In this document: positions 9,934-35,062 of the stretch, in pieces
Position numbering within the stretch: the first letter of the stretch is position 1
Layout: the number at the start of each line of letters is the position of its first letter
Sequence record: NC_061444.1
Reading direction: 5' to 3' (one strand)
DNA length: 64,000 nt
Program-made: the position numbers and the translations under genes
The notes under the pieces: model-generated
The model's input: the letters and a program-made list of their open reading frames with translations, nothing else
Databases searched by the model: none
Told to the model about the DNA's origin: nothing

Positions 9934-10476
9934 ATGACGGAAAAGATTACGCAGTTGGCAAAGTGGTTTGATGCGGCGAAAGTCGCATTCAAGATGGGGA
10001 CAGTTAATCCAGACGGTGATGCTGCGTTGCTTCTGGCAATTCACAAACGTCTGATTAAAGAAGTCGAAGATGCTGGTGATGCAGAAACCAAAGCATTCGC
10101 TCAGACAAATCTGTCAGAGTTCATTTCGGATCTGCGCATAGAGCTGCGCATGTTCGACCTGATCTGCAGGCGCTTCAACACTGACCTGTACCCTCAGATC
10201 AAAATCGGCGATGACGTCAAAATCTATATCGCGCTCATGGCTCAAACGCCGGGCAGTGCTGTAATGGCAATGACGTACCTGTATCTTGCTCGCTGCTACA
10301 CGCTGCAAGACATGATCTTAAACTTCCTCCCGAACGGCTTCCCGGCCTCAGATGCTCTCGGTCTTACGTGGAGCATTCAGAAAGGGAACAGTGATGCGTT
10401 CACCGGAAATCTGGTGGACGATATCGAAACTGTAAATAGCCTGTACAATAAGATGTATAGCTCAGGAGAGAAGTAA
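9934..10476 (+). CDS. hypothetical protein (180 aa)
   Basis: SD gagga, long ORF in operon. Confidence 0.65.
   Translation: MTEKITQLAKWFDAAKVAFKMGTVNPDGDAALLLAIHKRLIKEVEDAGDAETKAFAQTNLSEFISDLRIELRMFDLICRRFNTDLYPQIKIGDDVKIYIALMAQTPGSAVMAMTYLYLARCYTLQDMILNFLPNGFPASDALGLTWSIQKGNSDAFTGNLVDDIETVNSLYNKMYSSGEK
10429..10438 (+). promoter_or_regulatory. putative phage promoter, CTGTAAA class
   Basis: ACTGTAAATA 37 nt before the macrodomain ATG. Confidence 0.5.
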
Positions 10477-11063
10477 TGGATTTGTCTGCAATCGGTTACG
10501 CTTCGAAACAGTTCCGAGTAATCCCCGTTGAGAAGGGAAATCTCGTGACTGATTTTATTCAAGGTAAGTTCCGCGTTATCGGTGTTGAGTGCAATGCCCG
10601 TGGTGCTTACGGTAGTCCTATCCAGCAGAGTATCGCACGGCGCTTCCCGGAAGTCATGCGCAAAGTCGAATCAGTTGACTACGAGCATGAACTGACTATC
10701 GGTAAGACTCATCTTATTCGTGTTGGTACTCAACACCGCCGCAATCTGTTTGTTGCTAACATGCACATTGCTCGCGGTTTCGGTCTGGGCCTCAATCGCA
10801 CTATGTCCGAAGGCCCGATCAACCGTTTCAGTGAGCAGCACCTGACGCGAGCGTTTGAACATCTGATTGAACAGTGTGATAAAGAGAACATCGCACTCGA
10901 CCGTCAGATCGCTATTCAGCGCTTCTATGGTGGACTCGGCGGAGTTTCGTGGGAAGAAGTATGTGTAGTCCTTGATGCTATCTGTGAAAAGCACAAGTTC
11001 AACATGTACGCGTACCTACCACGTAACTACAATTCTAACTACGTGCGTGGTAGCGCGAACTAA
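10476..11063 (+). CDS. macrodomain (ADP-ribose binding/hydrolase-like) protein
   Basis: KGNLV...VECNARGAYGSPIQQSIARRFP and IAIQRFYGGLGGVSWEEV resemble T4 Tk.4/Poa1-type macrodomains. Confidence 0.7.
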   Translation: MDLSAIGYASKQFRVIPVEKGNLVTDFIQGKFRVIGVECNARGAYGSPIQQSIARRFPEVMRKVESVDYEHELTIGKTHLIRVGTQHRRNLFVANMHIARGFGLGLNRTMSEGPINRFSEQHLTRAFEHLIEQCDKENIALDRQIAIQRFYGGLGGVSWEEVCVVLDAICEKHKFNMYAYLPRNYNSNYVRGSAN

Positions 11064-12228: not shown

Positions 12229-12999
12229 ATGAGCAACATTGATAATACAATGCCTGAGGGCAAGTGGGAGTTCAACGAGCCTGTTGCTGCTGTGTTTGAT
12301 AACATGCTGCAAAACTCAATCCCGTCGTATGGCCGTATGCGCGACTTGACCTATCGTCTGGGTCGTCAGTTCGTCACGCCCGGTACTGCTATCGTTGACC
12401 TCGGAGCTTCTCTGGGTCGTGCTATTGAGCCGTTCTGCAAAGAGTTCGGCGAGTACATCTACGTTCACGCTGCTGACCGTCCTGAGCCAGATCGTGAAAT
12501 CGGTAACATGTACTGCTGCTACGAAGTCGCTCCTGCGATGCTTGAACGCCTGCGTGAAAACGAAGTGCTGAAAGCGGCCAAAGCGAAAATCAGTAGCGAA
12601 TCGCTGGTGGACGTTGACACGTTCCGCTTCGACGAACAGGTTGAGTGCTCGCTCATTCTGTCTGTACTCACTCTCCAGTTCACGCCGATTGAACATCGTC
12701 AACACGTCCTTGAGAAAGTCTATGACTCTCTTGCAAAAGGCGGTGCGTTCATTCTCGTTGAGAAGGTTCTCGGTGACGACAACTTCCTCGACCGTCTGCT
12801 GGTGGACACGTACTATCACATGAAAGGCGACAACGGCTACACGCAAGAATCTATTGCATGTAAGCGTAAGTCACTCGAAGGTATTCTGGTGCCTGTCAAA
12901 GCTGCATGGAACGAAGAACTGCTGCGCAAAGCGGGCTTCAACCGTGTAGAATGTTTCTACCGCGATCTCAACTTCGCCGGATGGATCGCAATTAAGTAA
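12229..12999 (+). CDS. cmoA: CmoA-like carboxy-SAM synthase
   Basis: WEFNEPVAAVFDNMLQNSIPSY, VDLGASLG, TLQF, GGAFILVEK, KRKSLE and LNF align along the full length with bacterial CmoA; the KR Arg is kept. Confidence 0.88.
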   Translation: MSNIDNTMPEGKWEFNEPVAAVFDNMLQNSIPSYGRMRDLTYRLGRQFVTPGTAIVDLGASLGRAIEPFCKEFGEYIYVHAADRPEPDREIGNMYCCYEVAPAMLERLRENEVLKAAKAKISSESLVDVDTFRFDEQVECSLILSVLTLQFTPIEHRQHVLEKVYDSLAKGGAFILVEKVLGDDNFLDRLLVDTYYHMKGDNGYTQESIACKRKSLEGILVPVKAAWNEELLRKAGFNRVECFYRDLNFAGWIAIK

Positions 13000-13009
13000 G
13001 GGAAGTAGC

Positions 13010-14272
13010 ATGAAAGTAAACGGGCGTATCTTAGCAATCGTACCGCACAAGACTCTGGCTGATCGCACGAAGTCTGGTGTTGGTGCTTACATCGACGGAC
13101 TCGAAGCGTATGGCTTCTGCGACTTCATCACTGACGGTGAGAACAGTTCCGTAACCAAGAGCTTGTGGTTTAACTACGGTGACACCACGCTGAGTGATGG
13201 TTACAAAGTAGGGCACATTCAAAGTGAACTGCTTGCTGCTCTTGAGCGTCATCCGTATCGTGCAATCATTTGCAGCACATACGAAGCGATTGAAGCTGCT
13301 GTCGGTCTGGGCTTGCCAAAGATTATGCCCGTTTACTATCGTTCGCATAACAGCTTCCTGTTGACGCAAGATCTCAATGGTCTCGGTGCTGAGAAGATTC
13401 ACCGTGCTCTACTGCAAGCTGGCGTAACTGGTCTGCGTGTGTTAGCGAACTGTGATTCAACTGCAAACAATCTGGCATCACGTTATCCTGTTGCTGCGTC
13501 TGTCGCGTACAACTCGTTCAACGTGCCTGACTACAATCCACCAGCAAAGCGCAAGCCGACGCTGTTGATTATCTGTCGCTACGAAAAGGTTAAGCGCCCT
13601 GCGTTTGCTGCTCGTATCGCTGCTGCATCTGGTCTGCCTGTTCGTGTGATGACGGGCAGTGATCGCCAAGTTAAAAGCTGGCAGAAAGAATTGACCGATG
13701 CTGGTGTCAAAGACCATACAGTCGTTAGCGGTATCAGCGGCAAAGAGAAACTTGAGTTCATCGGTGCTTGTACCGTGGCTCTCTCCTGCGCTGAAATCGA
13801 ATCGTTCGCTAACGGTGTGCGTGAGTCTATCCCGTACTGCCCAACGTTCATCGTGCAAACATCGAAGTTCGACTGGGCGAAAGATTACACACGCTTCTGC
13901 TCTCTGGACAAACACATCCACGTTCGCACTGTTGACCGTGTGACAGAGCAGGAAGTCACTGAGCTGGGTAATGAGATTGCTTACTGGGCTACTACTCGCT
14001 ACCTGAACAATGCTCAACGTAAAGACTTGATGACCAAGTGGGTTGCTCAAGTCGATAAGGGCTGGGCTGACTTTATGAAGAATGCCGTTGTTGCTGATGA
14101 CGGCAAGCCCCTGAAAACTGACCTGTCGAAAGAACTCGAACAAAAAGGCGTAGTAGACTGGTCAGAAGTACCTGCGCTTATGCGTACTGTAAAAGCATTA
14201 CACAAATGCCATGCTCGTATGGGCCTGACATTCGATGGCACCAAAATCAAAACTAAAGGAAGAAAGAAATGA
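13010..14272 (+). CDS. GT-B fold glycosyltransferase (GT4-like)
   Basis: N-terminal SGVGAYI, ICRYEKVKRP, E-x7-E motif ESFANGVRE. Confidence 0.75.
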   Translation: MKVNGRILAIVPHKTLADRTKSGVGAYIDGLEAYGFCDFITDGENSSVTKSLWFNYGDTTLSDGYKVGHIQSELLAALERHPYRAIICSTYEAIEAAVGLGLPKIMPVYYRSHNSFLLTQDLNGLGAEKIHRALLQAGVTGLRVLANCDSTANNLASRYPVAASVAYNSFNVPDYNPPAKRKPTLLIICRYEKVKRPAFAARIAAASGLPVRVMTGSDRQVKSWQKELTDAGVKDHTVVSGISGKEKLEFIGACTVALSCAEIESFANGVRESIPYCPTFIVQTSKFDWAKDYTRFCSLDKHIHVRTVDRVTEQEVTELGNEIAYWATTRYLNNAQRKDLMTKWVAQVDKGWADFMKNAVVADDGKPLKTDLSKELEQKGVVDWSEVPALMRTVKALHKCHARMGLTFDGTKIKTKGRKK

Positions 14273-15303
14273 GCGTGATTGGTGATATCTATAACATTCC
14301 TCAACCGTATGCGATGTACTGCGGCAATGCCAAAACCAAAGCAATGGCAAAGATTACTGCCGGTATGGTTGAGTGGGCTCCTGAGAAGGTATGTTGTGTA
14401 GTCGAAGACGCTGAACGTTTGTTCGCTGACGTACCGTGTGTTGAAGTGCGCGATCTCGATAAGACCGACGCTGAAACTCTGGTTATCGGCTTTGCGCCAT
14501 TTGGCGGTCAGATTAACGACGACATTGATCGCGTTGTCTGCGAAGCATTAAAGCGCGGTCTGAACGTTGCTGCTGCTCTGCACGTCAAACTGGCAGACAA
14601 TCCTAAATACTTCGCGCTCGCTCGTGAGCACGGTGTATCACTGTATGACTTCCGCCATCACCCTGAGCAATATCCTCTGGGCACCGGTATTCGTCGTGAC
14701 GGTATTCGCGTTCTGACTGTTGGCACCGACTGCTCCTGCGGTAAGAAATTCACTGCGCTCGCTCTGACCAAGAAGCTGACCGAGATGAGTCAGAAAGCTG
14801 TGTTCTGTGCTACAGGCCAGACAGGCTTCTTGATTAGCGGTCGTGGCATCAACAACGACACTGTGGTTGCTGACTTCCTTGCTGGTGCTGCTGAGTGGCT
14901 TTCACCTGATGACAAAGACGCAATCTATTTGATTGAAGGTCAAGGCGCTATTCGTCACCCTGCGTATACTGGCGGCAGCATGAGTCTGATTGCTGGCTCG
15001 CAACCTGATGCGCTCGTTATGTGTCACACTGTTGGCCGTAACGTCATGATGGGCACTGAGCGCGAGATCAGTATCACGGACGAAATCTCTGCTAACCTTG
15101 CAGCGGCTGCGATGCACGACTGGTACCCTCGCGTTGTTGGTATCAGTATCAACTTCTGCGAGTCTGGTATGAACAAAGAACAGCGCAAGAAGTATCTGGC
15201 GACTATTGAGCGTAACATCGGCTACGTAGCGTTCGACCCGCAAGAAGGTGGCGAAGCATTTGACCGTGTTGCTACTACCATCGCGTTGCTGTCGCGCCCA
15301 TGA
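14269..15303 (+). CDS. DUF1611 family protein (DgcN-like)
   Basis: GFAPFGGQI, VLTVGTDCSCGKKFTA, ATGQTG, DFLAGAAE, IEGQGAIRHPAY, GSQPDALVMCH. Confidence 0.88.
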   Translation: MSVIGDIYNIPQPYAMYCGNAKTKAMAKITAGMVEWAPEKVCCVVEDAERLFADVPCVEVRDLDKTDAETLVIGFAPFGGQINDDIDRVVCEALKRGLNVAAALHVKLADNPKYFALAREHGVSLYDFRHHPEQYPLGTGIRRDGIRVLTVGTDCSCGKKFTALALTKKLTEMSQKAVFCATGQTGFLISGRGINNDTVVADFLAGAAEWLSPDDKDAIYLIEGQGAIRHPAYTGGSMSLIAGSQPDALVMCHTVGRNVMMGTEREISITDEISANLAAAAMHDWYPRVVGISINFCESGMNKEQRKKYLATIERNIGYVAFDPQEGGEAFDRVATTIALLSRP

Positions 15304-16235
15304 TAGTCCTAATCGACAACGCTGCGTTAGCGAGTAATGCAGCGTATTTAAAATCACTCGCACCGACCATGATTCCAGTTGTGAAAGGTAATTTCTATGG
15401 GCATGGTTTAGATTGCGTGGCAGCGTTCGCGTCTGACTTTGACGTGCTTGCAGTGCATAACGTCCGAGAGGCATTGACGCTGCGTGAGCTTGGACTTGAC
15501 CACACGCTGCTGATTCTCGGTGGTACTGACGCGCGTATGTGGAATATAGTTCCTGTATTGAATGCAGCGCAAGCCTCAACGTATGAAGGCCAGTATGCTG
15601 TGTTTGCTGATTGGGGCTGTCGTCGTATCAATGTCAGCCCTGGCCAACTTACCAGTCGCCCAGCTCTCGTTCTCATTCACTCTGAGGACTACCGTCAGCC
15701 TGTGTCTGCGCACACTGCTAACGAGATTGCTGTGCGTTACAACATGCCGCGCTCTCGATTGTCTGTAGGCTCAAGCATGAATGCGCTTACACCAGACGCG
15801 CCGAAGTTGATGCCGCGTGTTGGTATGGCACTTACCGGTTATAGCAGTGATGAAACTGTTAACGGTAATTTGATCGTAGCGAAGACAGTGCTTGCTCGCA
15901 TCTGCGATAAGCTGGATGCTGGTCGAGTATTTGGTTACGGTGCATTAGTGCCTAACAGCGCACACATGTTCCTGTATTCGATTGATGTGGGTTATTACGA
16001 TAACTTATATCAGTCAGAGAACAACACGCCTGTGCATTGCCCTACTGTGCCACACGCTAAGGTCACGTTGCTTACTGGCGTTGCGCGATCAATCAGCATG
16101 AACCATGCCTTCGTATTGTCAGATACTGAGCTACCGTTCGACTCTGAAATTGAATTGCTTGGACCGAACGTTCGCGCAGATTATCTGGCCAAACTTCACG
16201 GAACAACAACTGCGAATATTTTAAGGCTGGGTTAA
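15300..16235 (+). CDS. alr: alanine racemase-like PLP enzyme (fold type III)
   Basis: IPVVKGNFYGHG (PLP Lys), EALTLRELG, RVGMALTG, FGYG, VGYYD, ISMN; shorter than typical Alr. Confidence 0.8.
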   Translation: MIVLIDNAALASNAAYLKSLAPTMIPVVKGNFYGHGLDCVAAFASDFDVLAVHNVREALTLRELGLDHTLLILGGTDARMWNIVPVLNAAQASTYEGQYAVFADWGCRRINVSPGQLTSRPALVLIHSEDYRQPVSAHTANEIAVRYNMPRSRLSVGSSMNALTPDAPKLMPRVGMALTGYSSDETVNGNLIVAKTVLARICDKLDAGRVFGYGALVPNSAHMFLYSIDVGYYDNLYQSENNTPVHCPTVPHAKVTLLTGVARSISMNHAFVLSDTELPFDSEIELLGPNVRADYLAKLHGTTTANILRLG

Positions 16236-16237
16236 TC

Positions 16238-17107
16238 ATGGCTAAACACGTTTTGCGTAAGCTGTTTGAGCAGCACGTTAAGCAAGAGGTTAAAGCGGAC
16301 AAAGTTGCAGTGCTGCTGTCAAGCGGCCTTGATGGACTTGTCAGTGCTCTTGCTGCCCACGACTTAGGAAAGAAGGTACATGCCTTTACTTTCCAGATGG
16401 GTGACAACGAAAGTTTTGACAGCAAACACGCACGTAAAGTAGCAGAGAAGATGGGCTGGGAGTTCACGCTTGTGAAAGTTCCTACGTCCGACACTGCTAT
16501 CGCTCAGGGCTGGCGCACACTTCACGCCAAGTATCGCTGTATCAAAAAGCGTGACTACGAGTGTGCTTACCCTATGGTGTATTGCTACAAGGCAATCAAA
16601 GAAGCAGGTTACAAGTACGTTCTCAGCGGCCTTGTTGCTGACGCTTACTTCTGCTTTGCGCGTAATACCCACATCGCAAAAATCAGCGGCCCGCATAGCG
16701 TACTCGAAAAGTTCGACGAGTATCGCAAAGAGTATTGGGCGCCGTGGTTCAAGAACGGTAAGAAGTCTCTCGGCGTTGACGGCTATAATCCAAGTGGTAT
16801 GCTGCAACACGAAATGCTGTGCGACACTTTCGGCCTGACTCACGTTAACCCGTGGCTGTTGAAAAAAGTCCATGACTACTTCATCGGTCGTTCGTGGCAA
16901 GAACTAAATCAACCCAAGCAGAAAATGCCAATAACAGAAGCCTGGGCTGATCACATCGCTGTGGTAGGGCATCGTCCTCACCGTGGCTATCAAACAGAAG
17001 CTGGAGTACCTGCGTACTTCGAACGCTTACTGGATAATCCTGAGATCAACTTCAACGGTCGCAAGCGTGTTATGGACCTTGCGCGTGATTGGTCAACGAG
17101 GACTTAA
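16238..17107 (+). CDS. asparagine synthase C-terminal-domain-like ATP-dependent amide ligase (no glutaminase domain)
   Basis: PP-loop VLLSSGLDG, VLSGLVADAYF (cf. SGEGADELF), NPWL (cf. PFLD). Confidence 0.75.
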   Translation: MAKHVLRKLFEQHVKQEVKADKVAVLLSSGLDGLVSALAAHDLGKKVHAFTFQMGDNESFDSKHARKVAEKMGWEFTLVKVPTSDTAIAQGWRTLHAKYRCIKKRDYECAYPMVYCYKAIKEAGYKYVLSGLVADAYFCFARNTHIAKISGPHSVLEKFDEYRKEYWAPWFKNGKKSLGVDGYNPSGMLQHEMLCDTFGLTHVNPWLLKKVHDYFIGRSWQELNQPKQKMPITEAWADHIAVVGHRPHRGYQTEAGVPAYFERLLDNPEINFNGRKRVMDLARDWSTRT

Positions 17108-17108
17108 T

Positions 17109-17729
17109 ATGTTAGTACACATCATTGACGGAAGCGTAGGCGGTAACTATGTATTCCATAATCTGCAAGAGGCTGGTATCAACGCGCGTGTTCATGCTCC
17201 TAGTGATCCACGTCGCCGCGCAGTAGCAGCAACCTATCCTTCGCTGTCTATGGGATTTACTCCCGAAGAGATTGAGAAGCATATCGGTAATGTGCTTGGC
17301 ACGTATCGCGGTCTGTTCTTGATTAGCAGCTATGTTGGTTCGCTGGTGGCTCGCAGTATGATTGACCAGTGTGGTCAGAGTCATAACATCATCTACTGCG
17401 ATGATCTCAAGTGCGGGTCTACGCCTGTCGTTGCTTCCTCGATTTCTGTAAATGTCTATCAGAAGCAACGACAACTCGGACGCATTGCAGGTCGAATCAA
17501 ACACTTCGACTTCGACCATGAGTTCATTGTAGCTGACAAGGCTGTGCGTTTTGCAGCAGGGTCAGAATTTGATGAGCATGGTGCGCGTGAAGAACTGGAC
17601 GACACGCCCAAGTTCTTATCGAGTCCGTCAATGATTGTTGCTGCACACAAACTCGGTGTGAAGCGCAACGTGTATCACAACTACGCTGGTCTGGTGCAAG
17701 AGTTCCTTGAAAAGTGCCAGCAGCAATAA
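17109..17729 (+). CDS. hypothetical protein, degenerate Glu/Asp racemase (MurI)-like
   Basis: N-terminal IIDGSVGG resembles MurI VIDSGVGG; LISSYVGSLVA sits where IACNTASA would be; ATG 1 nt after the upstream stop. Confidence 0.45.
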   Translation: MLVHIIDGSVGGNYVFHNLQEAGINARVHAPSDPRRRAVAATYPSLSMGFTPEEIEKHIGNVLGTYRGLFLISSYVGSLVARSMIDQCGQSHNIIYCDDLKCGSTPVVASSISVNVYQKQRQLGRIAGRIKHFDFDHEFIVADKAVRFAAGSEFDEHGAREELDDTPKFLSSPSMIVAAHKLGVKRNVYHNYAGLVQEFLEKCQQQ

Positions 17730-20437: not shown

Positions 20438-21280
20438 ATGACAGTAATCAGCCCCATTCGTTATCAGGGCAATAAGCGTAGCCTTATCCCTCTTATTCTT
20501 GAAAACACACCTGATGTGAAAGACTGCCCGCGTATGGTCGATGTGTTTGGCGGTAGTGCCACCGTGTGCGCGAACATGCCTCAGAAGTTTCGCGTCTACA
20601 ACGAGCTTAGTCCTCAGGTGTATGAGATCGTTAAGATGCTTGTCGAGCAAGACCCGAAGAAAACATTGGGTCAAGTCAAGCGTCTGGTAAAGCACTGGTG
20701 CCTGACAAACAGCAACGAAGCGAACTATGACGCGTTTCGAACTGTCGTCCAGAAGAAGCGTACTCCCATACTTCACTACGTTGCGCACAGACACGCACAC
20801 TCGAACATGCTGCGCTTTAACCAGCAGGGTGTGTACAACGTAGGCTTCGGCGATCGTGGTCTGATTGGAAAGTTCGAGGAGCTTGAGCATGAGCTTACGA
20901 CATTCCACCAGCACATGCAGGGTGTTCACCTAACGAACATGAAGTACGGTAAGTTGTTGGGTAGACTCAGCAATCAACTGGATTGCAATACGTTCTGCTA
21001 CTTCGACCCGCCGTATCTGGCAAGTGGCGCGATGCAGTACGGCAAGTGGACTGAATCTAACGAACGTAACCTGCTTGCTACGCTTGAACAACTCAATCGC
21101 TTAGGCGTACCGTGGATGTTGAGCAACGTTACAGAGCACAGGCATTTCTCGAACGACCTGTTAAAGCGTTGGCTAAAGAAACACGCGACGACCGTGCTCT
21201 ACCCGAACAAAAGCTATGCGATGAACAACGGCCAGAGTGGCTCGCATGGTACTGTTGAAATTCTGGCAATGAACTACTGA
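20438..21280 (+). CDS. dam: Dam-like (D12 class) DNA adenine methyltransferase
   Basis: SPIRYQGNK, DVFGGSATV, DPPY, WMLSN; target sequence not determinable. Confidence 0.88.
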   Translation: MTVISPIRYQGNKRSLIPLILENTPDVKDCPRMVDVFGGSATVCANMPQKFRVYNELSPQVYEIVKMLVEQDPKKTLGQVKRLVKHWCLTNSNEANYDAFRTVVQKKRTPILHYVAHRHAHSNMLRFNQQGVYNVGFGDRGLIGKFEELEHELTTFHQHMQGVHLTNMKYGKLLGRLSNQLDCNTFCYFDPPYLASGAMQYGKWTESNERNLLATLEQLNRLGVPWMLSNVTEHRHFSNDLLKRWLKKHATTVLYPNKSYAMNNGQSGSHGTVEILAMNY

Positions 21281-23984: not shown

Positions 23985-24375
23985 CGGCGCGTCTGACGAT
24001 GAAGTTCGTAAGTATTACGAGCAGATTCACAAGGACGCAGAAGCAATCATGCAGCAGGTGTGGGCGCTTCGTGGTTGGACTATTCGCTGGGAGTGGCACA
24101 ACGGCATTTGCGATGACTGTGAATTTATTTTCGATGAAACAGGCAAATGCCGTGGCACTAAGTCTGATGCCATACCTCAGCAGGTGGGGATAGCTGACCG
24201 CATCGACGCGCTAAAGCTGTCTGTTTCGCACACCAAGAAATCTGTAAAGATAACTAACAAACATGCTGAAAAGCCAGTTGAAGGAAAAGGCCGTAATGTG
24301 CGCCTTGCTTATCTCGACTGGTTGCTCAGTGTTGAAAAGCAGAAAGCTGAGGAGAGAAAGTGCGCTGCAACTTAA
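23965..24375 (+). CDS. hypothetical protein
   Basis: ATG 23965 with ggag SD. Confidence 0.6.
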   Translation: MYHQLSDGASDDEVRKYYEQIHKDAEAIMQQVWALRGWTIRWEWHNGICDDCEFIFDETGKCRGTKSDAIPQQVGIADRIDALKLSVSHTKKSVKITNKHAEKPVEGKGRNVRLAYLDWLLSVEKQKAEERKCAAT

Positions 24376-24881
24376 CTGAACTACCAATCAAGCTCGAACA
24401 GGCCGAGTTTATTATGGCAAGCGTCTTTGCGCTCGCTGGTGCTTCTAAATCGAAACGCCGTGCGACTGCTGCGATGCTGGTGCACTTTCACAAAGGCTTC
24501 CCCACTATTATCAGTAGTGGCGTGAACGGTACGATGCCTGGTGAGAGCAACGTCATGGAGAACGCTGACCTGACGCTCTCCCTTGACACTGTTATTCACG
24601 CAGAAGCGAACTGCCTGAATCGCATGGAAGAGTACAACATGTGGTCGGACGATCAGGACATTTTGTTCTGCACCGATTCGCCGTGTCCAAACTGTCTGGC
24701 GTATCTTGAAGCGGAAGGCGTTAAGACGATTGTGTACGCGCGAGAGTATCGCCTGACCGATCATCTGGATGCGTCTGATATCAAGATGTTCTGTCTCGAT
24801 ATGGACAGCGTTATTCAGCGTATGCAACACAGCATCGACCGCAGCAAAGAAGTGATTGCAACAACCCCAGCGTCTAATTAA
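24360..24881 (+). CDS. dCMP deaminase-like zinc deaminase
   Basis: SGVNGT, HAEANC, SPCPNC, IVYAREY. Confidence 0.88.
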   Translation: MRCNLTELPIKLEQAEFIMASVFALAGASKSKRRATAAMLVHFHKGFPTIISSGVNGTMPGESNVMENADLTLSLDTVIHAEANCLNRMEEYNMWSDDQDILFCTDSPCPNCLAYLEAEGVKTIVYAREYRLTDHLDASDIKMFCLDMDSVIQRMQHSIDRSKEVIATTPASN

Positions 24882-32226: not shown

Positions 32227-32931
32227 ATGGCAAAAACTGCTACCAAAACAAAGGACGGAAAAAAGAAAGGCGAGTTGAAGTTTGATCTGAAAAAACTCAA
32301 TTCAGTCTCTCAGCTCAAGGGCGCAGAGTACAACCCGCGCTTCATTACTGACAGTCGCTTGAAAGCTCTCGAAGGTTCTCTCGGGAGTTTCGGTGATCTG
32401 TCTGGTATCGTGTTCAACAACAACATCAAGTCTGGTGTGTTGATCTCAGGCCACCAGCGTCTGAAATCAATCGACGGTTGGAAAACTCGCATCGAGATTC
32501 AGCCGACGACTGACAAGCACGGTACTATCGGTCTGGGCTACATTCATGCAACGCATCCGAAGAAAGCTGATCGTGTTATCAGCATTCCTCTGCGTGTCGT
32601 GAACTGGACTGATAAGAAAGCTGAGTACGCAGCGAACATCGCAGCGAACGCCCACGGCGGTGAGTTCGATAACAAGAAGCTCGCCAAGCTGGTTGAGAAA
32701 CTCGATCTGAATACGATCAAGCCTCAGCTGCTGGGTCTCGACCCGCTTGAGATTCGTGGTCTGCAAGCCAAGATCAAGATTCAGGCGAACGTCGAAGATA
32801 CGAAACGTGCTGGCAAGACTACTGGCCAGATGAACGGCAGCACCGGTAAGTTTAATGAGTACAACCCTGATGATGTGGGTGACACTCTGAACTGCACCTG
32901 CCCGCGTTGTGGATTTAAGTTCGAGGGATAA
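32227..32931 (+). CDS. ParB/Srx-like domain protein with C-terminal zinc ribbon
   Basis: YNPR, SLGSFG, LISGHQR, ANAHGGEFD, CTCPRCGFKF; start re-called. Confidence 0.8.
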   Translation: MAKTATKTKDGKKKGELKFDLKKLNSVSQLKGAEYNPRFITDSRLKALEGSLGSFGDLSGIVFNNNIKSGVLISGHQRLKSIDGWKTRIEIQPTTDKHGTIGLGYIHATHPKKADRVISIPLRVVNWTDKKAEYAANIAANAHGGEFDNKKLAKLVEKLDLNTIKPQLLGLDPLEIRGLQAKIKIQANVEDTKRAGKTTGQMNGSTGKFNEYNPDDVGDTLNCTCPRCGFKFEG

Positions 32932-32932
32932 T

Positions 32933-35062
32933 ATGATCATCAAGCCGCCAACCATGAAGGAAATCAACAAGCTGGCTAAACCCTGGCGTGGTATGAGTTT
33001 CTTCGCAGGTTGCGGTGGGTCTTCGACCGGTCACAAGATGGCCGGTATCGACATTCTGTTGAGCAACGAGTTTATTGACTCTGCGCGTGAGTCGTATGAA
33101 GCAAACCACCCGACAACCAAAGTGCTGCCTCATGATATCCGTCGCTTAGACCCAAGCAAGCTGTTGCGCTACTGCGGTCTTGCTAAGGGTGAGCTGGATT
33201 TGCTTGATGGTAGTCCTCCGTGCTTTACCGAAGACACAATCATCCACACTGCTGACGGCATGAAGTTCATTTCTGATATGCACGTCAACGATCTGGCAAT
33301 GACGAGCGTTGGTGAATACTTTCCTGTGTACGACACTATGGTTCGTCCGTATGTCGGTACGATGCACAAGATTGAAACGATGCTCGGTAGCAACAAAGCA
33401 ACGCCAGAGCACCCGTTCTTTGTTCGTCGCTCTCAGGCAGACGGTAGCTACTCTGAGCCGTTCTGGTGTGATGCGAAAGACGTGCAAGAAGGTGACTTGC
33501 TCTGTACGCCGCGCACTACCCCTGACATGGGGATTGACGTGTATCAGGCTCAGATTGATCAGTTGCCTAAGTTAGTAGCGGACTGGGTGACTTACCCTGA
33601 GTTCTGGTGGATGATTGGTCACTGGTGTGATCGTGGCACAATCGAAACAGTTAACGGTGTTGACGTCATCTGCTTCGAGTCGCACTCAAGCCTTGAGAAC
33701 GCGATGATCGAGCAGGCGTTTGATGCGCTTAAAATCAGTAGCCTGAATCGTATCGACACGACAACGGCGCAGCGCAAAACATTCCGCACTGTTATCGAAG
33801 CAGAGCTGGTGCAGTTCCTGCGTCGATTCGTCAGTCAGGAGCAGAACAAGTTTTCTCGTCGTCTGCCTGCAATCGTGTTCCATTTGTCAAACGAGTTGAA
33901 GCAACAATTCATTCTCGGTTGTGCGGGGCATGACTACGTGACTGCTATGGGCACAAGCCTTGCTATCACATCTGATAGTCGCCGCTTCCTGATTGAGCTG
34001 AACTACCTGTGTGCGTCTGCTTTCAATCGTCCGCTGTTTGACGGTCTTATCTGGGCAGACGTTAACTTCGGTAGTGCGTTAACGCCGCGTGAGCGTAACA
34101 GTTCACGAGCGCATATCGGCTTCCTGTTCCTGCAGGATGAAGCGCTGTTCATGCACGAGTTCTCCGATGAAGACCCGCATCTCTGGGTTGAAGTGATTGA
34201 GAACCTCGCGTATCAGGCGACCTGTGACGTGTATAACTTCTCTGTGCAGACAGACGAGACATACGTTGCAAATAGCATGGTCGTTCACAACTGCAAAGGC
34301 TTCTCTACTGCTGGTGTGAAAGAAGAAGGCTGGGGCAAAGAAGTTAAATACAGCGACAACAAGTATCAGCAGGTTGATGACCTGTTCGATCAGTATTGCC
34401 GTATGTTGCAAGGCATGGAGCCAAAAGTGTTCACTGCGGAAAACGTCAGTGGCCTAATCAAGGGTACCTCTAAAGGGTACTTTGTCGAAATCATGAAGCA
34501 CTTCGACAGATTAGGTTATTATGTTCGTGCTCCGATGTTGAATGCTTGCTGGCTTGGCGTACCGCAATCGCGTGAGCGTATCATCTTCATGGGTGTGCGT
34601 AAAGACGTTGCCCACGCACTCGGCTATAAGTCTGCTCAGACCGCTGTGCCTGATGTTATCCCGTGCGAGACGCAAGCGTTTCTCGGTGATGCGTTACCGC
34701 ACATCATGCGATACAAAACAACGCAGCGTGACCTGATCAAATATCTGCCTGCCGTTAACGGTCCGATGCCTACGATTACTGCTGCTGATGCGATTGCGTA
34801 TGAGACTGCGCGATTCTCGTCTGCTGGCTTTATCGAAGACAACAAAGGTCATCGCCGTAAGCTGACCATCGACGAACTCAAAGTTATCTCTGGACTGCCG
34901 TCTGACTATAAGCTGATGGGCGAGTTTGAAGAACAATGGGAACGTCTTGGTCGTATCTGTGTGCCAGCAATGACACACGCTGCATCTAAGGCTTTCATCG
35001 AGCACATTCTTCTGCCGTATGCGAAGAAGCGTAAGAAGAAGCCCGGCGATATCTTTAAGTAA
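32933..35062 (+). CDS. C5 cytosine methyltransferase-fold enzyme with intein; candidate cytosine carboxymethyltransferase (CmoX-like)
   Basis: Motif I FAGCGG, IV GSPP/C, VI AENV, VIII QSRERI; motif X reads LGRICVP instead of GNAVP. Confidence 0.85.
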   Translation: MIIKPPTMKEINKLAKPWRGMSFFAGCGGSSTGHKMAGIDILLSNEFIDSARESYEANHPTTKVLPHDIRRLDPSKLLRYCGLAKGELDLLDGSPPCFTEDTIIHTADGMKFISDMHVNDLAMTSVGEYFPVYDTMVRPYVGTMHKIETMLGSNKATPEHPFFVRRSQADGSYSEPFWCDAKDVQEGDLLCTPRTTPDMGIDVYQAQIDQLPKLVADWVTYPEFWWMIGHWCDRGTIETVNGVDVICFESHSSLENAMIEQAFDALKISSLNRIDTTTAQRKTFRTVIEAELVQFLRRFVSQEQNKFSRRLPAIVFHLSNELKQQFILGCAGHDYVTAMGTSLAITSDSRRFLIELNYLCASAFNRPLFDGLIWADVNFGSALTPRERNSSRAHIGFLFLQDEALFMHEFSDEDPHLWVEVIENLAYQATCDVYNFSVQTDETYVANSMVVHNCKGFSTAGVKEEGWGKEVKYSDNKYQQVDDLFDQYCRMLQGMEPKVFTAENVSGLIKGTSKGYFVEIMKHFDRLGYYVRAPMLNACWLGVPQSRERIIFMGVRKDVAHALGYKSAQTAVPDVIPCETQAFLGDALPHIMRYKTTQRDLIKYLPAVNGPMPTITAADAIAYETARFSSAGFIEDNKGHRRKLTIDELKVISGLPSDYKLMGEFEEQWERLGRICVPAMTHAASKAFIEHILLPYAKKRKKKPGDIFK
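33221..34291 (+). mobile_element. 357-aa intein with degenerate LAGLIDADG region
   Basis: Starts CFTEDT, ATPEHPF, ends YNFSV...VHN followed by Cys; removal restores SPPCKGFS. Confidence 0.92.

Follow-up and report, generated by a model that had tools for sequence, protein, structure and literature searches.

A stand-alone AsnB-type protein of Erwinia phage pEa_SNUABM_32 as a probable CmoY-family DNA amide ligase with a DUF1611 partner

Hypermodification of DNA through 5-carboxymethylcytosine (5cxmC) was described in December 2025; one amide, that of glycine, is known, "alternative amine substrates" were left open, and further ligase clusters using other amines were predicted (PMC12783734). 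The known enzyme, SpCmoY (A0A514ABJ0 / QDH50619) of Synechococcus phage S-B43, is an ATP-dependent 5cxmC-glycine DNA amide ligase (Yang et al., Nat Commun 2025, PMC12783734), and its ligation of glycine to 5cxmC in double-stranded DNA with ATP was demonstrated both in vivo and in vitro (PMC12783734). SpCmoY consists of an AsnB-type ATP-binding synthetase domain without a glutamine-hydrolysing domain (Supplementary Table 1, PMC12783734). Here we examine gp020, a protein of Erwinia phage pEa_SNUABM_32 (NC_061444.1). This member of the genus Alexandravirus is a jumbo phage with a genome of 265,891 bp and infects Erwinia amylovora; gp020 is encoded in its first 64 kb. This 64-kb stretch is referred to as the window, and its coordinates are those of the genome. 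The record annotates MPK67_gp020 as a "hypothetical protein", and its open reading frame (ORF) codes for 289 amino acids (aa). We consider it probable (at a rough probability of 0.8) that gp020 belongs to the CmoY family of ATP-dependent amide ligases and works on phage DNA, a reading that takes both the chemistry and the DNA substrate from the characterised homologue SpCmoY. The gene and its main elements are as follows.

16238–17107, plus strand: gp020 (MPK67_gp020), predicted stand-alone AsnB-type PP-loop ATP-dependent amide ligase, a CmoY homologue of a DUF1611-coupled subfamily
16319–16336, plus strand: variant PP-loop SSGLDG, the pyrophosphate-binding loop (residues 28–33 of gp020, read from the translation)
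16625–16648, plus strand: SGLVADAY (residues 130–137, G131 and D135 invariant), counterpart of LTGYGAD in beta-lactam synthetase
16652–16702, plus strand: predicted 17-residue coil loop after the Asp motif (residues 139–155; DSSP coil, predicted local distance difference test score (pLDDT) 64–77 in the model)
16739–16786, plus strand: clade-specific insertion of 13 extra residues (approximately residues 168–183, from alignments), missing in the SpCmoY clade

The only substantial domain match of gp020 is to Pfam Asn_synthase (E 6.9e-16), and it is confined to residues 6–139; the NCBIfam model asn_synth_AEB reaches 57 bits against a cutoff of 267. Weaker PP-loop matches in Pfam are to QueC (5.3e-6, residues 23–84), NAD_synthase, and tRNA_Me_trans. 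The first-pass annotation, made from the letters alone, had described a 289-aa ORF with the motifs SSGLDG and SGLVADAY, both of which are read directly in the translation, and had noted that the N-terminal Cys1 domain of the N-terminal nucleophile (Ntn) type is missing. Only 27 residues precede the PP-loop, and the ORF before gp020 belongs to another gene, whose end lies 2 nt upstream; this glutaminase domain is therefore indeed absent from gp020. SpCmoY is likewise without one, and the stand-alone architecture is thus the norm for the family.

The counterparts of the gp020 PP-loop in the alignments are LLSGGLDS in human ASNS and E. coli AsnB and LSGGIDS in beta-lactam synthetase. At position 29, Ser is found in all 15 close-clade sequences, and Gly is kept in 52 sequences of the SpCmoY clade. 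With S28, G30, and D32 invariant and S29 fixed in the clade, the variant loop is not a product of chance degeneration. The residues that are invariant in an alignment of 15 homologues and in both clades are L26-L27-S28-x-G30-x-D32, G131, D135, Q228-K229, R163, R275, and R277. In profile alignments against ASNS and beta-lactam synthetase, the PP-loop, the G-x-x-A-D motif, and the P-K-Q-K segment fall on the matching catalytic elements of the two enzymes. K229 lies opposite their catalytic lysine segment, and Leu132 occupies the position of Glu348 in AsnB and Tyr348 in beta-lactam synthetase.

In a tblastn search of 50,697 phage records, close copies of gp020 (82–100% identity) were found in 34 Alexandravirus records. 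The next match, at 33% identity, was a "putative asparagine synthase" of Synechococcus phages S-B43, S-B05, and RB11-B, and the matched S-B43 gene (147774–148589) is SpCmoY. The pairwise BLASTP alignment of the two proteins is essentially full length (34% identity, E 3e-54, residues 14–287 against 10–263); they are reciprocal best hits, and each is the sole match of the other in the respective genome. The earlier suggestion of a CmoY analogue working on 5cxmC DNA therefore gains support at the sequence level from the reciprocal best hit with SpCmoY and from the presence in the genome of CmoA and of a CmoX with the SPPC motif and its Arg. Every sequence-level hallmark of CmoY is found: a synthetase domain only, full-length homology to SpCmoY, and CmoA and CmoX encoded by the same genome.

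The predicted fold agrees. An AlphaFold2 model of gp020 built from 14 homologues (pLDDT 90.4, predicted template-modelling score (pTM) 0.90) has its best Foldseek matches in the synthetase domains of beta-lactam synthetase, E. coli AsnB, human ASNS, and carbapenam synthetase (E ~1e-9, query template-modelling score (TMq) 0.60–0.68, residues 6–289). For QueC, LarE, TtuA, and NAD synthetase, TMq is 0.27–0.41 and the match involves the PP-loop part only. Domain search and model thus both confirm, as far as computation goes, the stand-alone AsnB-type adenylating ligase that the first reading had proposed, and in the structural comparison suggested there the best match is not QueC or a tRNA thiolase (TMq ~0.3–0.4). 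An identity as QueC or as a tRNA thiolase (TtuA, MnmA, or LarE type) was rejected after the whole-protein match failed and only the N-terminal 60–90 residues aligned. Glutamine-hydrolysing AsnB was rejected as well: gp020 has no Cys1 Ntn domain and carries SSGLDG/SGLVADA, not SGGLDS/SGEGSDE with Glu348.

Compared with its best structural matches, namely AsnB, beta-lactam synthetase, and carbapenam synthetase (1mc1, 1ct9, 8sue, 1q19; TMq 0.60–0.68), gp020 would by analogy share the chemistry of carboxylate adenylation followed by amine attack. On the other hand, it is only 14–21% identical to them and lacks an N-terminal glutaminase(-like) domain. Their substrates are small molecules, whereas that of gp020, judged from SpCmoY, would be a modified DNA base. 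The likeness to SpCmoY is closer: both are AsnB synthetase domains of ~270–290 aa, alignable end to end, with the same invariant core and with CmoA, CmoX, and ParB partners. They differ in the PP-loop (SGGVDS in SpCmoY, SSGLDG in gp020), in ~20 fixed substitutions between the clades (for example R105-D106 vs T-H and Y251/T253 vs L/L), and in the 13-residue insertion, which SpCmoY lacks. The gp020 clade is basic (pI 9.3–10.2), whereas SpCmoY is acidic (pI 5.8). In the tree, the gp020 clade forms a branch separate from the SpCmoY clade with support of 100/100. It keeps the conserved arginines of the SpCmoY clade alongside many clade-specific changes, which bears on whether the glycine pocket is retained.

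The gene lies in a tight co-directional block, gp016–gp021, with gaps or overlaps of ≤10 nt. Scans for promoters and terminators inside this cassette gave chance-level results. Its other members are as follows.

12229–12999, plus strand: gp016, CmoA homologue (carboxy-SAM synthase), first gene of the cassette; NCBIfam TIGR00740, 2.9e-41
13010–14272, plus strand: gp017, GT4-like glycosyltransferase (GT) of the GT-B fold, an optional module; invariant E264 and E272 correspond to the EX7E motif
14269–15303, plus strand: gp018, DUF1611/DgcN-like P-loop protein; Pfam DUF1611 5.5e-51, DUF1611_N 2.1e-17
15300–16235, plus strand: gp019, short (311 aa) pyridoxal 5'-phosphate (PLP) enzyme of the alanine-racemase family; Pfam Ala_racemase_N 8e-15
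17109–17729, plus strand: gp021, 206 aa, last gene of the tight operon, of uncertain pathway membership

The CmoA homologue gp016 is 31% identical (E 2e-29) to the biochemically active SpCmoA. The candidate CmoX is encoded further downstream, behind a ParB-like gene.

32227–32931, plus strand: gp050, ParB-like protein immediately upstream of CmoX; PHROG 620 ParB-like, 3.1e-32
32933–35062, plus strand: gp051, CmoX-type cytosine C5 (carboxy)methyltransferase with an intein; Pfam DNA_methylase 5.8e-38, Intein_splicing 4e-9
33221–34291, plus strand: intein of 357 aa (CFTEDT...VVHN; Intein_splicing, intein_Cterm), placed directly before the catalytic Cys of SPPC

A tblastn search of the window with SpCmoX gave two pieces (32993–33223 and 34292–35011), both within gp051, and the intein junctions read GSPP|CFTEDT...VVHN|CKGFS. 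When spliced in silico, gp051 aligns with SpCmoX and keeps GSPPC and ERLGR, the latter with the Arg equivalent to R350; an SPPC motif and a Cx-SAM-binding Arg are the features by which CmoX proteins are called (PMC12783734). The association of ParBc with CmoX is known from many CmoX loci (PMC12783734), and in the metagenomic phage contig L087, whose CmoX orthologue has no intein, an orthologue of gp050 (46% identity) directly precedes that gene. Matches to SpCmoX in two pieces ~2 kb apart were also seen in the methylases of pEa_SNUABM_5, Yoloswag, and Yersinia phage fHe-Yen9-02.

Related loci point in the same direction. The L087 contig, with a ligase 59% identical to gp020, carries an uninterrupted operon of ParB-like, CmoX, CmoA, GT, DUF1611, racemase-like, and ligase genes. 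Three other loci (L094, L096, and L097) have the order C5-methylase, DUF1611, (racemase), ligase, and CmoA-like methyltransferase, and in L095 the order is C5-methylase, CmoA-like methyltransferase, DUF1611, and ligase; the ligases of L094–L097 are 39–77% identical to gp020. Moreover, seven long relatives were examined, and in six of them (metagenomic proteins P0082, P0111, P0138, P0140, P0156, and P0157) one natural protein joins the ligase domain to a C5 cytosine DNA methylase, with either domain coming first. Such fusions are Rosetta-stone evidence, at the level of sequence, for a two-step pathway. Among jumbo phages, AD1 and Y3 were reported to share a methyltransferase, an asparagine synthase, and a DNA-cytosine methyltransferase, all three of which JA11 lacks (Day et al., PMC6143709).

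The gp020-type gene is kept at 53–100% identity in numerous phage genomes and in metagenomes. When 1.84 billion representatives were searched exhaustively with HMMER, 511 relatives were returned, nearly all of 260–300 aa. In a scan of 185,579 cellular genomes the family was practically absent, with one distant match at 28% identity. This single cellular relative is a 269-aa stand-alone AsnB-like protein on a contig of Bacillus sp. M6-12 (L092, 7947–8756), near a phage-type integrase; the eight ORFs around it include no CmoA, CmoX, or DUF1611.

What sets the gp020 clade apart most clearly is its constant neighbour. In every member with readable gene context, a DUF1611 gene precedes the ligase directly or with one racemase gene between them; this covers the Alexandravirus phages and loci L085, L087, L089, and L094–L102, with ligase identities of 38–100%. 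Overlaps of a few bases between the DUF1611 and ligase genes are frequent. DUF1611 is found in 34 of the 50,697 phage records, all of them Alexandravirus, the same number as for the gp020-type ligase, and in none of 73 SpCmoY-type viral loci. Thus, gp020 loci always have DUF1611 and often a racemase and a GT4 glycosyltransferase, which SpCmoY-type loci do not. DUF1611 also evolves faster than its neighbours, with 56–61% identity between cassette types compared with 85% for the ligase and 91% for CmoA.

The DUF1611 protein gp018 matches DgcN over its full length. It scores 306.9 bits (1.4e-91) against the NCBIfam DgcN model NF041892, short of the equivalog cutoff of 480, matches the structure 7xrj (4.8e-62), and keeps the P-loop GTDCSCGKK. 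By these sequence measures gp018 is a member of the DUF1611 family and not a DgcN equivalog. The DgcN family is reported to act on D-acidic amino acids (Yu et al. 2023, as cited in a later paper). DgcN is a D-glutamate N-acetyltransferase of the D-Glu catabolic pathway (its NCBIfam name is N-acetyltransferase) that sits next to DgcA, whereas gp018 is phage-encoded inside a DNA-modification operon. We can only speculate that DUF1611 works after ligation, by acylating a second amine or by recognising a product that resembles an N-acyl-D-amino acid, or that it delivers the amine.

The second neighbour, the racemase, is optional. Its gene overlaps gp018 by 4 nt and is separated from gp020 by a 2-nt gap. 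Aligned with alanine racemases, gp019 keeps the PLP-lysine motif VVKGNFYGHG, R173, and Y232, the Tyr of the GY(A/Y)D motif. The racemase lies between DUF1611 and the ligase in 10 of 20 loci compared and, when present, is never elsewhere. It occurs in 12 of the 34 Alexandravirus records, the other 22 genomes having no counterpart of gp019 anywhere, and also in L087, L097, L098, L100, L101, and L102. The first-pass annotation had named the racemase next door as a plausible source of the amine; it had overlooked the constant partner DUF1611 and the glycosyltransferase.

Certain ligase residues vary together with the racemase. Presence of the racemase was predicted first from the ligase sequence, and gene contexts were checked afterwards. 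Racemase-bearing ligases have Ala147 and Trp167 (10 of 10 each) and Cys139 (9 of 10), a pattern written C(V)/A/W. Both derived racemase-less lineages have Leu139, Gln147, and Phe167; the first comprises AD1, SNUABM_22, SNUABM_33, SNUABM_7, and P0007, and the second P0010, whose sister P0005 bears the racemase. At position 147, a long polar residue is also found in basal racemase-less members and in the SpCmoY clade. In the model, positions 139 and 147 lie in the predicted coil loop (139–155) that follows directly after the invariant Asp135. Mapping the state of the racemase on the ligase tree requires 3–4 changes, and P0010 and P0005 stay together when the trait columns are taken out (97/92). 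The DUF1611 tree shows no clean split by racemase state.

The glycosyltransferase gp017 gave no match in Pfam, NCBIfam, or PHROG. A profile match to tetrahydrobiopterin glucosyltransferase (9v0l, 4e-5), an Atlas feature score of 0.98 to viral and bacterial GT4 clusters, and a weak Pfam Glycos_transf_1 match of its orthologue in L102 support the assignment. The GT is present in some racemase-bearing and in some racemase-less phages: pEa_SNUABM_32 has both genes, pEa_SNUABM_7 has the GT alone, and Dickeya phage AD1 and Erwinia phage Alexandra have neither. Its position inside a cytosine-modification operon suggests glycosylation of the adduct.

From these parts a pathway can be proposed. CmoA (gp016) would make carboxy-S-adenosylmethionine (carboxy-SAM, Cx-SAM), with which the spliced CmoX (gp051) would place a carboxymethyl group on C5 of DNA cytosines, giving 5cxmC. 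The PP-loop of gp020 would bind ATP, and the 5cxmC carboxylate would be adenylated with release of pyrophosphate; in this step the PP-loop would hold the pyrophosphate, D135 would bind Mg, and K229 would contact phosphate. A free amine, most likely that of an alpha-amino acid, would then attack the acyl-adenylate to give the 5cxmC amide and AMP, after which the DgcN-like gp018 and the GT4 enzyme gp017 may elaborate the appended residue by acylation and/or glycosylation. Tentatively, and at somewhat less than even odds, we propose that the amine of the DUF1611-coupled subfamily is a D-amino acid, drawn from the host pool in racemase-less phages and supplied by gp019 in pEa_SNUABM_32. The full scheme is a previously undescribed multi-step hypermodification in which 5-carboxymethylcytosine would receive a D-amino acid through an amide bond, the appended residue would be acylated and/or glycosylated, and loop 139–155 would be retuned upon gain or loss of the racemase; it is possible but more doubtful than that. 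Biologically, the modification would likely shield the phage genome against restriction and other host defences that target DNA.

Several points weigh against parts of this proposal. Regarding the ligase, the PP-loop of gp020 departs from canonical SGGxDS at two positions, and the basic pI of its clade is in itself no evidence of DNA binding because SpCmoY is acidic. The candidate CmoX lies 16 kb from the cassette in pEa_SNUABM_32, and its activity requires intein splicing. A literature search turned up no biochemical or mass-spectrometric data for pEa_SNUABM_32 or any other Alexandravirus. DgcN-type N-acylation of the alpha-amine by DUF1611 would compete with ligation and block it. As for the racemase, the catalytic Tyr is Glu in the L087 orthologue, and the gene is absent from phages with 83–85% identical ligases (such as Dickeya phage AD1 and Erwinia phage Alexandra). 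Two independent losses of the racemase are suggested, but an approximately unbiased (AU) test does not reject a single loss (p = 0.10), and for this reason the co-variation of residues 139, 147, and 167 with the racemase is suggestive and not proven. It fits a racemase product, a D-amino acid, as the amine, with racemase-less phages perhaps using another amine or host D-Ala or D-Glu. The earlier suggestion that the amine comes from the racemase next door thus gains support from the wedged position of that gene in 10 of 20 loci, from the co-varying residues, and from the DgcN-like partner, but it stays conjectural.

The strongest competing explanation, although unlikely, is that gp020 is an ordinary SpCmoY orthologue that ligates glycine to give 5gcxmC, in which case DUF1611, racemase, and GT would serve otherwise or would modify the glycyl product. 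All residues invariant in the SpCmoY clade are kept, including R163, R275, and R277, and the largest ligase cluster has glycine-carboxylate-binding residues (PMC12783734). Against a glycine ligase stand the identity of only 34%, the ~20 fixed clade-specific differences, the 13-residue insertion, and the altered PP-loop. The contrast in context is equally strict, with DUF1611 beside every gp020-clade locus and beside 0 of 73 of the SpCmoY type, and the loop residues co-vary with the racemase.

Considerably less probable is the amidation of 5cxmC with free ammonia to 5-carbamoylmethylcytosine, in the manner of an ammonia-dependent AsnB synthetase domain. AsnB synthetase domains are able to use ammonia, and no residue of gp020 has been assigned to amine binding. 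However, the phage ligases for which ammonia is the predicted amine come with a glutaminase domain of their own (PMC12783734). In addition, SpCmoY, which uses an amino acid, is the closer relative of gp020, its conserved arginines are retained there, and the racemase and DgcN-like neighbours point to amino acids.

We give marginally less credence to a ligase that acts on a small-molecule carboxylate, for example an N-acyl-D-amino acid from gp018, to yield a metabolite or a precursor attached to DNA later. The strict coupling and translational overlap with DUF1611 would fit such a substrate, as would the use of small molecules by the AsnB and beta-lactam synthetase relatives. Nevertheless, gp020 is homologous to a DNA-acting enzyme, its relatives are fused to C5 DNA methylases, and the CmoX-DUF1611-ligase-CmoA module is conserved; if the ligase did not act on DNA, a CmoY homologue would be of no use to 5cxmC.

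A role in RNA or tRNA modification, as a QueC-, TilS-, or thiolase-like PP-loop enzyme or by amidating a cmo5U-type tRNA modification via the phage CmoA, would accommodate the weak PP-loop matches to QueC, NAD synthase, and tRNA_Me_trans and the cellular role of CmoA in tRNA, but is highly improbable given that QueC, LarE, and TtuA match the fold of the N-terminal PP-loop only (TMq 0.3–0.4 vs 0.6–0.7 for AsnB and beta-lactam synthetase) and that gene contexts and fusions all involve DNA C5-methylases.

The probable assignment of gp020 as a CmoY-family DNA ligase has several implications. The description of the 5cxmC system (PMC12783734) makes no mention of DUF1611, racemases, glycosyltransferases, inteins, or Erwinia and Dickeya jumbo phages. 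The ligase itself was to be expected; the novelty lies in the obligate DgcN-like partner, in the racemase and GT as modular additions, and in the possible D-amino-acid adduct. The Alexandravirus phages of Erwinia and Dickeya offer a cultured, tractable system for 5cxmC amide chemistry. Close isolates differ by modules (racemase present or absent, GT present or absent, type of ligase in sister genera) and form a natural knock-in/knock-out set that can serve to work out the chemistry and its effect on host defences. Phage DUF1611 proteins gain a first testable context, and an intein in the catalytic motif of a CmoX is flagged. If the D-amino-acid proposal is true, the adduct would be the first DNA base to contain a D-amino acid, extending the natural chemical repertoire of DNA, and the pathway would provide the first DNA-modification role for a DgcN/DUF1611 enzyme. 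The Alexandravirus phages are also candidates for fire-blight biocontrol, so that their DNA modification matters for host range and for artefacts in sequencing and cloning.

Sister genera occupy the same site with other ligases. In Erwinia phage Y3 (L090, 3025–5616) and pEa_SNUABM_5 (L091, 3045–5388), a CmoA 74–85% identical to gp016 is found at the syntenic site with a different stand-alone ligase downstream. The ligases of Y3, pEa_SNUABM_5, and Yoloswag resemble gp020 in size, in their position downstream of CmoA, and in the presence of a CmoX-type methylase in the genome (split in pEa_SNUABM_5 and Yoloswag). They differ from it in being only 25–33% identical to gp020 and closer to, or equally far from, SpCmoY, and in the lack of DUF1611 at these sites, where Y3 has a 2-oxoglutarate (2OG)-Fe(II) oxygenase instead. 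The locus looks like a hotspot at which the group carried by 5cxmC is diversified.

The last gene of the block, gp021, has no Pfam, NCBIfam, or PHROG match, and a protein language model gave a weak lead to alpha/beta serine hydrolases of the RBBP9/YdeN type. It is syntenic in AD1 (85%) and Y3 (59.5%) and has no counterpart in L087 or L010. In a racemase-less metagenomic phage (L085, 9192–10100; L086, 9526–10434), the GT-DUF1611-ligase block is followed by a gene for a GNAT acetyltransferase of 302 aa, which may be another optional tailoring module. Elsewhere in the window, a macro-domain-type protein, whose counterparts in AD1 and Y3 are annotated as O-acetyl-ADP-ribose deacetylase, is encoded at 10476–11063, and a Dam-type N6-adenine methylase and a dCMP deaminase are encoded at 20438–21280 and 24360–24881, respectively.

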